DNA from: Octopus sinensis
Lineage: Eukaryota
Assembly (NCBI RefSeq): GCF_006345805.1
Contig: NC_043010.1
Span: forward strand, 46,934,001-46,998,000
Direction of reading: 5' to 3'
DNA: 64,000 bases
The notes under the pieces are model-generated. The model saw nothing but the letters and a program-made list of their open reading frames with translations. It did no database searches and was not told the DNA's origin. A program made the translations under genes and the position numbers. How positions within the stretch are numbered: position 1 is the stretch's first letter; every line of letters begins with the position of its first letter. This document shows, piece by piece, positions 5,818 through 9,999 of the stretch.

Positions 5818-7773
5818 ACACTGTGTCAAGCTGGTTCTGCTTAAAGATTACATTGAGTTACAACGTGTCTGTGGAATAATACTCAGTCACTTTGAATCTA
5901 ATTCAGTGAGCACGTAGTTAAGCGACGGAGATCCTTTTTTACATTTCACACAACACTGTCTCGGTCCTCAGTTTCTTAACCCGACGTAGCATCGTGAATG
6001 TGACAGCTAGTGATTGGAAAGATGTACCAGCACCTGGTTGGAACTCATTTTCAGCTGTGTGTGTGTGTGTGTGTATAGCCGCAGAAATCCTTTAATATTC
6101 GGTTTGGGTTGCCTTGAATGTGGAGGGATACAATGAAGAATTCCAAAACCTTAAGCGAGGTTAATTTGCCACTGCCTATTTTGGTATTTATTTTCCCCCC
6201 ATTTTTGAAAAAAATGTCTTTATATAGTCTGTTATTACACCTTATAAATATCGGTGACCTTACAAAACTTATTTTGCCGTATCACAAGACTCATTTATTA
6301 TGTAGAAGAATGGAATATAACCGACAGCAATGTTACTGGCACTTATACCATTAGCCATAGTGAAGATTTGAACTCAGAAAGTAAAGCATCAAACAACCTC
6401 CTTATGTAATACATCTTTAGTCCTCATATCCTAATACGTATTATTTCATGGGCCGATTATTGATACCGATGCGTTTTTGTCAAAATTAGAAGTTATGGGG
6501 ATGACATTAAACTGCATCCAGTAATGGGATCCTGGTTCGGGAGTTGCAGGGTTTTGAGGTGTGTGGAGCCACCTATAAGCCACAATTGTTCACAGGTCTA
6601 TTCTGACCCAGAGTAGTAGCATCTGCCAGAGTCCTGGCTGTGGGTTAAATATAACACGTAAACTACCAGGTGGTTGTTCTCTATTTCGGCAAACGAACTT
6701 ATTGTGGTCAATGGCGAATATTATTTACATTACTAAGTGGATGAACAGGCTACAAACTGTCAACAGTCGGGATCAACCATTTCATTTAGCGAACTACGGC
6801 TTGCATGTATAGTCGTGTCATGTTTCTGCTAGCGAAAGACCAGTGTGTCTAAAACCGAAGTTAGATAGGCAGACATTCATATGCCTCATGGCTCGATCGA
6901 GACATTTGGCATGGAAGAGTTAACATTGGTCCGGGCAAGTTGCTCGACCTGGATGGATGAGACACATATTTGGACTAGGTTGCAAAGCTAACCTTTGTAA
7001 GAGAGAGAGGGAGAGAGTTGGTCGTTTAATTTACTCTAGTATATTATTAGTGTATGTGCTTGTTTTCTTGATCCTTGACTTAGCAGGATTTGAACTGAAG
7101 TACGGGACTTCACTGTTTCAACTACACTTACCGCCGCCCTCCAACATTAAGTCTTGGAGGTGTGATGTCTAACATTATCACAAGGCCAGAGATGGTAATG
7201 GTAGAGAAGGATTGCTTAAAGTCGCTTCAATCGATTCTCAGTAAAACTATTTATTTGCTACAGGGGAATTAAAAGCCAGTCATGTCCTGAATGATTTGAA
7301 TTCAGAACGTAATGGGTCGAAACTAAATACTACAAGGTATTTTAGCCGAGCGCTCGGCCATGTCTACCCTTTTGACTCGTCCATGTGAAGATCAGAAATG
7401 CATATTAAAAATATCTTATTTGATGAAAACAATCTATTGTCTTAATATATTATTTTTTTCACCATTGAGGCGATTGCACGAATGTTTTTTTTCGGCATAA
7501 TGTTTTCTCAAACAGATACAGTCCCGAGAGAGAGGCGCGGGTAAATAAGCTAGCAAGACGGTCATGGTTTTCTCAAGGGCATTAGCGATGTAATTAAAGT
7601 GGAAAGCTGGACACGAACTTGTTTCTACTATGCAATCGTGATTAGTACTAAACAGTTTATTTTCCTTTGTTTTTCACTGTTCTGTACACGAAAAAATATA
7701 AACTCCACACTTCTATTTATGAACGTAAAGATTATCATCTGTTATAAATCTATTTGAAATCTTTCTTTTAAGC

Positions 7774-7786
7774 GGCCAATCAGCTG
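7774..7786 (+). promoter_or_regulatory. CCAAT (NF-Y) box with overlapping CAGCTG E-box, upstream of the HTH ORF
   Basis: GGCCAATCAGCTG matches the RRCCAATCAG consensus, about 140 bp before ATG 7920. Confidence 0.45.
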
Positions 7787-7919
7787 AGAGATCGATATTG
7801 TGTTTAACGCATACACAGTAGAGACACAAACATAAACACACGTATATTTAATATACGTCTGCGTGTGTGTATGTTTGTATGTATGTACATATATATATAT
7901 ATTTGTTTATTTATTCAAC

Positions 7920-8282
7920 ATGGCTGACGATAAACGAAAAAGCTATCCGTTGATGTTTAAAAACAGTGTCCTTAAAATGCTTCGCGAAAACAATGGAAAC
8001 GTAGCTAAAACTGCTAGGGAATGTGGTGTACATAGGAAAAATATTCGGCGCTGGAAGTCTCAAGAAGCTTTGATTTCGGACACGGTTCAAAATCGTAAGA
8101 TGAATGCCGGATTTCGACGAAGGATACGGGATCGAAATTTAGTTCTTCTGGTATATATTTTCTTTCTTTCCTTTTTAAACATTCATCTTTACTTCCAGAC
8201 AAAAAGAAAAATCTACATATATAGAGAGAGTAATAATGATTATTATTGTTACTATAATGATGATGACACGAGTAATTTATAA
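7920..8282 (+). CDS. Stand-alone Brinker-type / pogo-family N-terminal helix-turn-helix ORF
   Basis: caacATGG start. MADDKRKSYPLMFKNSVLKMLRENNGNVAKTARECGVHRKNIRRWKSQE matches the recalled BrkDBD pattern (FK..VL...GN...TAR...HR..I..W..E). There are no stops to 8282. A possible 48-nt in-frame intron spans 8151-8198. No second HTH or DDE domain follows. Confidence 0.6.
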   Translation: MADDKRKSYPLMFKNSVLKMLRENNGNVAKTARECGVHRKNIRRWKSQEALISDTVQNRKMNAGFRRRIRDRNLVLLVYIFFLSFLNIHLYFQTKRKIYIYRESNNDYYCYYNDDDTSNL

Positions 8283-9999
8283 TGGAATATAATAATTTCT
8301 TTATAATTAACCGGTAAGGTAGGTGCGTGTACTTATAAACCACGGCGTTTTTCATATTACGAACGTCAAAAGTAAACATTAATAGACTCATGTGCTTATC
8401 TGATACATGTGTTTGTGTATGTTGTCTTCTTAGTTTACATGTACTTTCGTTTTAACAACACACCCACTCAATTTAAAAATTTATATGATTTATATATAAA
8501 TTAATTTTAAAATTAATATATATATATATATATTAGGAGGGGTCTGCGAAGGTCATGGGGCAAAACGGCAACTTCTTCCAGACCAAACTAGAAAAATAAA
8601 CAAATTAATTAAAAGAAAAGCTGATTAAAAAAATATGACTAATTTGATTTCTCAATTTTATTTAGTAACAAAACCGAATATGTTTTATCGATTAAAATTA
8701 CAGAATATTTATAGTGTAGCAATAATACGAATTATCTAAAAATTTGTCCTTATCGGAAAATCGAAAAGTAAACAGCTTATCAGACCTTTATTTGTTTTTT
8801 TTTTCTTTTTTCATTGATTTCCACGACTACCCTCATTTCGTCTGCTTTTGAGTCCACATCGGTTCGCTTAGTTAAACATGAACACTGGGTGATTAAATAA
8901 TGGTGATAAACGTTTGTATTTGCGGGCAAACAATTTTGACCGGGTTTATAAACTTTTTTTTTTCTGGTTTTTCCTTTCATTTAGTTAATATATTTAAATG
9001 GAAGTACGGATATCTTTGTAATGAAGAAAGCTGCTTTGTATTTTAAATGTAATTTATGTTTGTGTGGATATATTTATGTATATATAACATATACACGTGC
9101 GAATTCACGTACAGTGTGTTTATGTGCATACGTTCCTGATGGAAGTATTTGTATATATGTACAAATGTAAAGATTTCATATAGCCAACCTTGTACTGGGA
9201 CGGCTATAGTCGGCAGTGGTTGCGTGTCCATATGAGAGGCATGTGCTTAGATATATATATATATATATATATACACATAGTGTTTCGATGGTATATGAAA
9301 TAAACACTGGATTCCGATGCCTTGTTGTAAAGCAGTTTCGGAGCTAATGCTCTTAAAAACATGTACATGTTCTCTTCCTATATAAAACCGCTTACATTTT
9401 CTGTCGGTAGTCAAAATTATTTTAAAGCAGATATCCGATCCAATTATGAACATTATTGAATGGATTTTTCTGAATAACAACAAACTCTTTGGAACTTAGA
9501 TATGTTTTCTCCAAGTACTGCCTTCCTTCACGAGGACAGTGGAGTCATCTTTACATGTAGCATGCTAAATCCAGCCAGTGAGGAAGGCCCTATGCAGTCG
9601 CCCAAACTGCTAGAAATAGCAACCATATCGCCCCCAAATCACACCGTAACACACACAAAAAAAAAAGGAATAATATGATCCTGTGTGCACTCTGTCTGAA
9701 AACTATGTTGGATAATTACGGCTGGAATGATTTTAATTATAAATCTTACCTGCTTCATCAGGGCTGATTTGAAGCTAAACATTTGCTAATCAGACTGTGC
9801 TATTATAGATTTATTAGATTTAGCATGTCTTGGTTCCCGACTGAATGACTCTTACCCGAGATTTGTTAGGGCATCGAAAACTTTTTTTATACTTGCACTA
9901 AACAATGATAACACCAACAATTCCTGTAACAGGGATTTGCATAGATCTATTACTAGAAATACATGAAACTTCAGACGCAGGTTTCTTCTCCCAGTCAAA

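Follow-up and report, generated by a model that had tools for sequence, protein, structure and literature searches.

A conserved transposase-derived helix-turn-helix exon within fumarate hydratase intron 1 of octopods, and the HTH-fumarase that it may encode

What is an intact reading frame for a DNA-binding helix-turn-helix (HTH) doing beside the gene of a core metabolic enzyme? In a 64,000-nt stretch of Octopus sinensis contig NC_043010.1 (hereafter, the window), the original prediction described such a frame as a stand-alone mini-gene upstream of fumarate hydratase (FH), with two splicing outcomes: a 48-nt mini-intron yielding a 104-aa HTH protein, or an in-frame junction to FH exon 2 yielding an HTH-fumarase. 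Our starting points are direct observations, namely the anatomy of the locus, its synteny, purifying selection at the protein level and the identity of the spliced product with existing gene models. From these, we consider it probable that a domesticated transposase HTH constitutes an alternative first exon of FH, giving rise to an HTH-fumarase devoid of a mitochondrial signal and perhaps capable of binding DNA.

Position of the HTH exon in the FH gene

The sequence elements named by the original prediction are in place: a CCAAT box (7776–7780), the start context caacATGG (ATG at 7920–7922), 77 sense codons (7920–8150), the donor CTG/GTATAT at 8150/8151, an AG-ended 48-nt segment (8151–8198) and the phase-0 acceptor of FH exon 2 at 15634. 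The locus is laid out as follows:

7774..7796, + strand: conserved promoter-proximal motif GGCCAATCAGCTGAGAGATCGAT, containing the CCAAT box CCAATCAG
7797..7919, + strand: candidate 5′ leader plus core promoter for the probable alternative first exon
7920..8150, + strand: coding part of the probable alternative first exon, 77 codons
8151..15633, + strand: intron between the HTH exon and FH exon 2, with donor GTATAT (phase 0) and acceptor ttttcag/CCT (15633/15634)
15634..15762, + strand: FH exon 2 (PGASRLETD...EKMP), the first exon common to the mitochondrial and HTH isoforms
21060..36481, + strand: span of FH exons 3–9, stop included in the last
21060–21170, 23295–23471 and 26610–26765, + strand: FH exons 3–5
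28773–28884, 31800–31880 and 32414–32617, + strand: FH exons 6–8
36057–36481, + strand: FH exon 9, including the stop

Exons 2–9 have AG/GT at every splice site and form a 464-aa ORF without a stop, which carries the class II fumarase signature GSSIMPGKIN and the domains Lyase_1 (PF00206) and FumaraseC_C (PF10415), and matches human FH (3E04) with 772 bits. The canonical exon 1 was not found anywhere in the window. In O. bimaculoides (locus L001), it occupies 10001–10108, with the HTH exon at 40241–40471 and exon 2 at 49345; since exon 1 thus lies about 30 kb 5′ of the HTH exon, the latter sits inside FH intron 1. The order is the same in Argonauta (exon 1 at about 10003, HTH exon at 16036–16266, exon 2 at 20791), whose exon-1 region shows an apparent stop and an apparent shift of frame within the presequence. 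The frame is therefore not a mini-gene upstream of FH, and the FH promoter that had been placed near 10.2 kb finds no support, exon 1 being outside the window and, in O. bimaculoides, some 30 kb upstream.

In all three species (O. sinensis as well as O. bimaculoides and Argonauta) an in-frame stop precedes the HTH ATG, and no usable AG acceptor lies between the two. Consequently, translation must begin at the ATG at 7920, there can be no read-in from exon 1, and an internal cassette fed from exon 1 is ruled out. The possible leader contains out-of-frame upstream ATGs at 7871, 7879 and 7883, and positions 1–20000 gave no Rfam match. The 77-aa peptide expected from the coding sequence is strongly basic (pI 11.4, 20 K+R).

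Joining 7920–8150 to 15634 onward connects a phase-0 GT donor with a phase-0 AG acceptor in one frame, the arrangement by which host–transposase fusions are recognized. The in-frame HTH-fumarase envisaged by the original prediction is borne out at the level of gene models, as the 541-aa translation is identical to a public protein (our P0271; XP_029644594.1 in O. sinensis, CAI9733076.1 in O. vulgaris). With a counterpart of the same architecture in O. bimaculoides (XP_014786186.1), fusion models are annotated in three Octopus species, always under the sole name "fumarate hydratase(, mitochondrial) isoform X1". In these models the HTH exon replaces the 36-aa exon-1 presequence MFHCTTLHRIATKSIGVRLTFFCLQRFSRDKFYSNM, so that, judging by sequence, the HTH isoform would be without an N-terminal mitochondrial presequence. 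The fusion junction coincides with the start of the mature human FH chain, where about 25 additional residues extend the N-terminus of the crystallized construct 3E04. The predicted tryptic peptide across the junction is NLVLLPGASR, and the HTH part would yield peptides such as SQEALISDTVQNR.

Support for the 8150>15634 junction comes from gene models. NCBI Gnomon builds alternative isoforms out of transcript alignments. For O. vulgaris, the annotators obtained alternative forms with PASA, run on RNA-seq/Iso-Seq assemblies, and the pipeline also took O. bimaculoides proteins as hints (PMC10700109), so that the three models depend on one another to some extent. Isoform models present in three Octopus annotations, together with PASA isoform calling, are indirect evidence that the fusion transcript and protein are expressed. 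The longest Argonauta product on record has 465 aa; hence, no HTH isoform is annotated in that species.

A word-indexed protein search with the 77-aa query returned no match, and one with a 158-aa junction-spanning Octopus+Argonauta alignment returned two irrelevant matches; both missed the identical public protein and are hence uninformative. For the 120-aa read-through ORF, a look-up by exact identity yielded no record. Our literature searches and a 2026 survey of fumarase evolution contained no description of the HTH-fumarase fusion or its accessions; the survey reports no DNA-binding-domain-fused fumarase, and its text contains none of the words helix-turn-helix, DNA-binding, fusion or octopus. 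As a side observation, an alligator FH model carrying RT/RNaseH domains exemplifies an artefactual chimera between a transposable element and FH.

Domain identity and transposon ancestry

The suggested match to a Brinker-type HTH exceeds the Pfam thresholds, with 27.9 bits for BrkDBD (PF09607; curated cut-off 23.4; residues 6–50) and 26.8 bits for HTH_Tnp_1 (curated cut-off 24.1), and the precomputed Pfam annotation of the public 541-aa model likewise includes PF09607. The top PDB match by sequence is the Brinker–DNA complex 2GLO (E 0.0017). An AF2 model of the 77-aa domain (pLDDT 85; about 95 over residues 11–50) predicts helices at 11–23, 28–35 and 39–47, forming a helix-turn-helix of the Brinker/CENP-B_N type that is followed by a basic helical linker (49–76) including RRRIRDR. 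2GLO is also the top fold match (rmsd 1.5 Å over 54 columns, target-normalized TM 0.78, probability 1.00), and CENP-B (1HLV) superposes with an rmsd of 1.3 Å over 52 columns; with so small a domain, Foldseek gives weak E-values (0.14). The recognition-helix motif HRKNIRRW of the exon aligns with the DNA-contacting HRRQIQKW of Brinker. The exon shares its HTH fold and the signature HR+xI++W with the family of Brinker, pipsqueak, CENP-B and Jerky-TIGD-POGK. However, these pogo-related proteins are dedicated DNA-binding or centromere proteins, mostly with at least two HTH units (three repeats in the Brinker homologues examined), whereas the octopod exon contributes a single unit to an enzyme.

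In a library of 1.84 billion representatives, 178 proteins match the HTH at E ≤ 1e-3, with an E-value of 1e-14 for the top single-domain relative. The sequences closest to the HTH are the N-terminal parts of pogo/Tc5 transposases; the nearest single-domain ones are 45–64% identical, with none of the 1.84 billion representatives exceeding 64%, and continue into HTH_Tnp_Tc5, which is present in relatives P0139, P0176, P0191 and P0206. By eye, the alignment of P0206 seems to run on into the start of a DDE domain, although Pfam reports no DDE family there.

As originally noted, no such continuation follows the octopod exon: the + strand from 6001 to 10890 has no Pfam match to HTH_Tnp_Tc5 or DDE_1. 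Neither is there a convincing TIR pair, the inverted repeats being TA-microsatellite matches only. The HTH exon occurs once in the window and as one syntenic copy at each of the O. bimaculoides and Argonauta loci. The hallmarks of an autonomous pogo/Tc5 element (bipartite DNA-binding domain, DDE_1, TIR/TA TSD and multiple copies) were thus not found in the regions searched. The 77-codon ORF is best explained as what domestication has kept of an ancient pogo/Tc5-type transposon, namely HTH1 and the basic linker. Domestication, rather than a recent MITE, is favoured by an exon that is intact, syntenic and under purifying selection.

Conservation across octopods and the competing readings

The HTH exon lies intact in the same FH intron in O. 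sinensis/vulgaris, O. bimaculoides and Argonauta hians, and its dN/dS of 0.06 agrees with the domestication that had been proposed. Between O. sinensis and O. bimaculoides, 2 of the 231 nt differ, both synonymously (P 4.7e-5 against the 6.2% aligned intronic background), which equals the substitution rate of FH exon 2. Towards Argonauta, 69 of the 77 residues are identical (dS 0.86, dN 0.054, omega 0.063, binomial P 4e-10), the nucleotide differences fall 7/3/25 on codon positions 1/2/3 (P 8e-6), and pN is 0.052 for the HTH exon versus 0.063 for the FH exons. Of the eight amino acid differences, four affect residues 5, 12, 20 and 25, and the other four are in the C-terminal linker/tail (59, 60, 76 and 77), leaving residues 26–58, with helices 28–35 and 39–47 and HRKNIRRW, identical between Octopus and Argonauta.

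Signals around the coding part are likewise maintained, with the ATG, its Kozak context, the CCAAT motif and the donor GGTAT with its phase conserved in all three species. The motif at 7774..7796 is identical in O. bimaculoides and Argonauta hians, while the neighbouring sequence cannot be aligned with Argonauta; its CCAAT box CCAATCAG fits an NF-Y-type consensus and might therefore be bound by NF-Y. The last ~25 nt of the putative leader (TATTTGTTTATTTATTCAAC) and the context caacATGG are kept as far as Argonauta. Positions 7750–7919 differ from O. bimaculoides by one substitution and one 2-nt indel in all 170 nt (P 2.5e-4 versus the 6.2% intronic background). Alignability with Argonauta ends at the GT donor, and the acceptor context of FH exon 2 is conserved. 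No HTH exon was found at the FH locus of the cuttlefish Acanthosepion, where a weak HTH-like intronic match (L003, 14130–14222, E 7.6) turned out to be an unrelated Tc1/mariner remnant.

Could the fusion be real and its HTH no longer bind DNA, the basic extension serving nuclear import as an NLS, protein contact or translational control? The exon would then be, in effect, a way to make an MTS-less cytosolic/nuclear fumarase echoform, an idea consistent with the retention of HTH1 alone from a bipartite domain, with the marked basicity of the peptide (pI 11.4, 20 K+R) and with human MTS-less fumarase arising by alternative transcription initiation (Dik et al. 2016, as cited in PMC13655608). Yet the invariance of residues 26–58, including a recognition helix that aligns with the DNA-contacting residues of Brinker, counts against this view, and an NLS or spacer alone would not need a folded HTH as constrained as the enzyme itself. 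We therefore deem a loss of DNA binding unlikely.

Alternatively, FH intron 1 may house a small gene in its own right, whose transcript, unspliced or spliced to an unrecognized short terminal exon, encodes a free HTH protein of ~80–120 aa, with the database fusion being a chimeric model. Such a gene would account for a conserved promoter motif and ATG of its own, for an ORF that in each species runs on beyond the donor and for the lack of an annotated fusion in Argonauta; moreover, small single-HTH regulators exist. Nevertheless, conservation stops exactly at the GT donor, beyond which neither the tails obtained by reading through (43, 8 and 26 aa) nor their stops are related to one another. 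The 48-nt mini-intron and its 104-aa product are rejected, as the segment measures 47 nt in O. bimaculoides, shifting the frame, and cannot be aligned in Argonauta, where the tail has no homology. The sole other Argonauta-conserved block before exon 2, 11610–11745, has non-triplet indels and no conserved frame, and was rejected as a second exon of a separate HTH gene. Considering also that the phase-0/phase-0 match with exon 2 is held in three species and that fusion models exist in three Octopus species, a nested gene appears quite improbable.

Finally, the ORF might be a transposon relic without function, or a non-coding FH regulatory element that is conserved, and stay open by chance, with the gene models as prediction artefacts. 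This view would fit the 170 nt upstream, which the two Octopus species conserve to the same degree as the ORF, the second conserved non-coding block in the same intron and the chimeric TE-FH models known elsewhere, but is very hard to sustain given the third-position excess (7/3/25, P 8e-6), an omega of 0.06 with dS near saturation, and an ORF, ATG and donor intact in three genomes whose remaining intron cannot be aligned with Argonauta.

Possible function and known counterparts

The reading that we prefer, an alternative first exon heading an HTH-fumarase, implies the following course of events. A pogo/Tc5-type transposon would have inserted into FH intron 1 in an ancestor of incirrate octopods, and the captured fragment would now serve as an alternative first exon under its own CCAAT-box promoter. 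Translation would start at 7920 and the donor at 8150/8151 would be spliced to exon 2 at 15634, yielding a 541-aa product in which the basic HTH replaces the 36-aa presequence and heads a complete class II fumarase. Without a presequence, this isoform should remain outside mitochondria, and the basic HTH may bring it to the nucleus and to DNA. As fumarase is a homotetramer, each enzyme would bear four HTH heads, potentially fixing fumarate/malate interconversion at particular chromatin sites, where local fumarate could inhibit 2-oxoglutarate-dependent demethylases. Nuclear localization, DNA binding and a chromatin effect of the isoform are what we infer from these features; specific DNA binding is not assured, since only half of the transposase's bipartite DNA-binding domain is kept. 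In its most explicit form, a tetramer that sits on particular sites in the genome, perhaps terminal repeats left behind by pogo elements, and tunes 2-oxoglutarate-dependent histone/DNA demethylases through fumarate/malate, the proposal is a tentative one, and we would sooner doubt than assume it.

An enzyme and a transposase DNA-binding module are known to share one polypeptide in primate SETMAR, which unites a SET methyltransferase with the Hsmar1 mariner transposase and, like the octopod fusion, arose from a transposon exonized beside or within a host gene. SETMAR, however, carries the entire transposase at the C-terminus of an enzyme that already acted on chromatin, whereas in octopods a 77-aa HTH is placed at the N-terminus of a metabolic lyase.

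Host–transposase fusion genes such as KRABINER (Cosby et al., bioRxiv 10.1101/2020.05.07.082677) derive, like the octopod exon, from an intronic DNA transposon, and share with it an in-frame exonized transposase DNA-binding domain, purifying selection and decay of the catalytic domain and TIRs. The octopod exon differs in that the captured 5′ end would act as an alternative first exon driven by a promoter of its own, that HTH1 alone of the bipartite domain is kept, and that the host partner is a TCA-cycle enzyme instead of KRAB/SCAN/BTB-type regulatory domains; in addition, it occurs in cephalopods, while the cases catalogued by Cosby et al. are from tetrapods. Transposase capture, whose documented cases so far come mainly from vertebrates and mainly involve regulatory domains as partners, would thereby extend to cephalopods and to a core metabolic enzyme.

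On the enzyme side, the closest parallel is offered by the fumarase echoforms of yeast and human, MTS-less cytosolic/nuclear FH with a role in DNA damage (PMC6068284, PMC13655608). There, as in octopod FH, one gene supplies a mitochondrial and a presequence-less form, the human route being alternative transcription initiation. A comparable chromatin effect is achieved in yeast and human by transient recruitment of MTS-less fumarase, the known echoforms having no extra domain and reaching chromatin through protein partners or modification, in contrast to the covalently attached, predicted DNA-binding domain of the octopod isoform. The local-metabolite model for fumarase and several other metabolic enzymes rests mostly on such transient recruitment, whose effects are not easily told apart from bulk metabolism. 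The fusion, if expressed, would provide a clean genetic handle, since the targeting part is confined to one 77-aa exon that has a putative promoter to itself and could be deleted, swapped or mapped by ChIP, leaving the mitochondrial enzyme untouched. Should the DNA-tethered reading prove true, octopods would offer a natural case, more than 30 Myr old and probably much older, in which a fused DNA-binding domain brings the making of a metabolite to defined chromatin sites, with a role in gene regulation or DNA repair. The analysis also corrects the public label "mitochondrial isoform X1", which is attached to proteins that, as predicted from their N-termini, carry no mitochondrial presequence.

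The HTH exon and the fumarase gene models

The helix-turn-helix (HTH) reading frame, MADDKRKSYPLMFKNSVLKMLRENNGNVAKTARECGVHRKNIRRWKSQEALISDTVQNRKMNAGFRRRIRDRNLVLL, comprises 77 sense codons from its ATG (window 7920-8150, forward strand), with GTATAT directly 3′. The sequence elements of the original prediction were all confirmed at the positions proposed for them (window entries); the exons of the O. bimaculoides FH locus are given after them:

Window 7776-7780 (+), CCAAT box
Window 7920 (+), ATG in the Kozak-like context caacATGG
Window 8150/8151 (+), donor of the HTH exon
Window 8151-8198 (+), 48-nt segment ending in AG
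Window 15634 (+), acceptor of fumarate hydratase (FH) exon 2
O. bimaculoides FH locus 10001-10108, presequence exon (FH exon 1)
O. bimaculoides FH locus 40241-40471, HTH exon
O. bimaculoides FH locus 49345, FH exon 2

FH exons 2-9 were rebuilt within the window as an intact 464-aa ORF with AG/GT at every splice site, and a search with this ORF returned two O. bimaculoides isoforms. X2 (500 aa) begins with the 36-aa mitochondrial presequence; residues 1-77 of X1 (541 aa) are exactly the HTH-exon ORF, after which the sequence continues PGASRLETD.... The O. sinensis protein XP_029644594.1, the same as O. vulgaris CAI9733076.1 (541 aa), came from a cluster look-up together with a 500-aa partner. 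The predicted in-frame fusion, window 7920-8150 spliced to exons 2-9, translates identically to these two accessions and is therefore already public, though undescribed, as a gene model; our literature search found no description of an HTH-fumarase fusion, and database entries label the HTH isoform "mitochondrial".

The ORF had been taken for a stand-alone gene upstream of FH. Because of the exon order in O. bimaculoides, it is instead placed inside the first intron of FH, 30 kb 3′ of exon 1. Canonical exon 1 is absent from the whole window, so the FH promoter suggested near 10.2 kb is unsupported. The neighbourhood is syntenic across coleoids, since a convergent SET-domain gene lies 3′ of FH in three species; the cuttlefish copy combines SET with a weak zf-MYND match.

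O. bimaculoides FH locus 73989-82518 (-), SET-domain gene
Argonauta hians FH locus 29579-36411 (-), SET-domain gene
Acanthosepion pharaonis FH locus 30677-39160 (-), SET-domain gene

Transposon origin and predicted fold

The Brinker-type identity was borne out by BrkDBD (27.9 bits versus a curated Pfam cut-off of 23.4), and the 77-codon peptide also matches HTH_Tnp_1 (26.8 bits versus 24.1). An exhaustive HMMER search found 178 relatives at E<=1e-3. The nearest single-HTH relatives (45-64% identical) are pogo/Tc5-type transposase N-termini that run on into HTH_Tnp_Tc5, and one of the transposase relatives (P0206) appears from the alignment to reach the start of the DDE domain, with no DDE family assigned to it by Pfam; multi-repeat relatives are Brinker homologues or pogo N-terminus arrays. 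The octopod exon ends within the basic linker, where the second HTH of its relatives begins. The forward strand of window 6001-10890 carries no further Pfam domain, and the inverted repeats near the exon are TA-microsatellite matches only. HTH1 is the only defining transposon feature retained, and the window holds a single copy of the exon, which, judged by its sequence, is a domesticated transposon fragment and not a transposon.

The octopod case is like known host-transposase fusion genes in kind, in which the DNA-binding domain of a transposase was captured by splicing (bioRxiv 10.1101/2020.05.07.082677). Unusual here are the TCA-cycle enzyme as host partner, the captured domain as an alternative first exon replacing an organelle-targeting signal, the cephalopod lineage, and conservation reaching Argonauta.

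The rival that the HTH merely serves the fusion as a nuclear localization signal or spacer is to be weighed with the peptide's pI of 11.4 on one side and its predicted fold on the other. An AlphaFold2 model built from a 38-sequence alignment (pLDDT 85) has helices at 11-23, 28-35, 39-47 and 49-76, and in the PDB it most closely matches the Brinker DBD-DNA complex 2GLO (rmsd 1.5 Å), also the best match by sequence, and CENP-B 1HLV (rmsd 1.3 Å). Alignment of the FH part with human FH begins at the first residue encoded by exon 2, a point where the human crystal construct 3E04 carries about 25 additional N-terminal residues; the structure could thus plausibly accommodate an N-terminal addition.

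Exon boundaries and selective constraint

GTAT directly follows codon 77 in all three species compared (the window, O. bimaculoides and Argonauta), and sequence conservation stops there. A further rival is that the exon encodes a free small HTH protein. One such product, of 104 aa, had been predicted through removal of the 48-nt segment as a mini-intron; it fails, since the putative intron is 47 nt in O. bimaculoides. Read-through past the donor gives mutually unrelated tails of 43, 8 and 26 aa. On the 5′ side, an in-frame stop precedes the ATG in all three species (just 6 nt away in Argonauta), with no usable acceptor between the two in any of them; the ORF is therefore not readable from exon 1, and its product cannot carry the presequence. 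Between the HTH exon and exon 3, Argonauta-conserved sequence is limited to FH exon 2 and one non-coding block, and the phase-0 acceptor of exon 2 fits the HTH-exon donor in all species. Because this boundary conservation comes together with isoform models in three annotations, the predicted HTH-FH fusion is the best-supported product.

How far these models amount to transcript evidence depends on how they were built. Gnomon isoforms derive from transcript alignments. In the O. vulgaris annotation, alternative forms come from PASA transcript assemblies, with O. bimaculoides proteins also used as hints (PMC10700109). An Alligator sinensis "fumarate hydratase" model of 623 aa with reverse-transcriptase/RNase H Pfam domains (P0115) is likely a TE-host chimeric annotation, a caution that fusion models need comparative support.

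O. sinensis/vulgaris and O. bimaculoides split about 34 Myr ago (PMC10700109). Across their collinear first introns, 6.2% of aligned sites carry substitutions; the HTH ORF differs at 2 of 231 nt, both synonymous (P 4.7e-5), comparable to 1 of 129 nt in FH exon 2, and the 170 nt 5′ of the ORF show one substitution and one 2-nt indel. An intact orthologue of the exon lies between FH exons 1 and 2 in Argonauta hians:

Argonauta FH locus, about 10003, FH exon 1
Argonauta FH locus 16036-16266, 77-codon HTH orthologue
Argonauta FH locus 20791, FH exon 2

Here 69 of 77 residues are identical to the window, and the rest of the intron is unalignable except for a 23-nt motif (GGCCAATCAGCTGAGAGATCGAT), a stretch of roughly 25 nt directly before the ATG, and one non-coding block. 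With dN 0.054 and dS 0.86, omega is 0.063 (binomial P 4e-10); differences at codon positions 1/2/3 number 7/3/25 (P 8e-6), and pN is 0.052 versus 0.063 for FH exons. As read from these substitutions, constraint on the exon is at the protein level, beyond a conserved DNA element, which leaves little room for the exon as a relic or the fusion as an artefact. The FH locus of the cuttlefish Acanthosepion lacks the exon; a weak HTH-like match there proved to be a mariner remnant.

The Argonauta homologue of the presequence exon (~9890-10003 of its locus) is interrupted by an in-frame TGA and changes frame, and the 465-aa Argonauta FH model takes the final ATG of exon 1 as its start and lacks the presequence; either these lesions are assembly errors or the mitochondrial signal is encoded elsewhere.

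Predicted role and neighbouring elements

At the level of gene models, the HTH exon, with a conserved CCAAT motif of its own, is shown to act as an alternative first exon that puts a conserved HTH in place of the presequence, the rest of the fumarase being complete. Such an isoform would be non-mitochondrial and nuclear; as a tetramer it would present four HTH heads and bind DNA, placing fumarate/malate interconversion on chromatin. It would parallel known fumarase echoforms, in their nuclear role (PMC6068284) and in alternative initiation, the latter as cited in PMC13655608.

The putative 5′ leader (7819-7919) contains a near-palindrome (7819-7848/7850-7879) and three out-of-frame ATGs (7871, 7879 and 7883) that could act as uORFs, depending on the TSS. 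Intron 1 also holds a second conserved island:

Window 11610-11745 (+); O. bimaculoides FH locus ~43860-44000; Argonauta FH locus 18991-19106

In the surrounding 250-nt bin (11568-11817), identity with O. bimaculoides reaches 98%. The island aligns with Argonauta at 73%, with indels that are not multiples of three and an unconserved reading frame; it carries NFI-site-like TTGGC...GCCA(A) motifs, has no Rfam match, and may be an intronic enhancer serving one of two FH promoters. Several short interspersed repeat families (window 2570-2890, 12560-12880, 13309-13577, 14327-14600 and others) are scattered over the O. bimaculoides locus in numerous diverged copies of either orientation (67-85% identical), and related ORF fragments recur at window 14299-14616, 19732-20064, 24804-25274 and 53359-53670.
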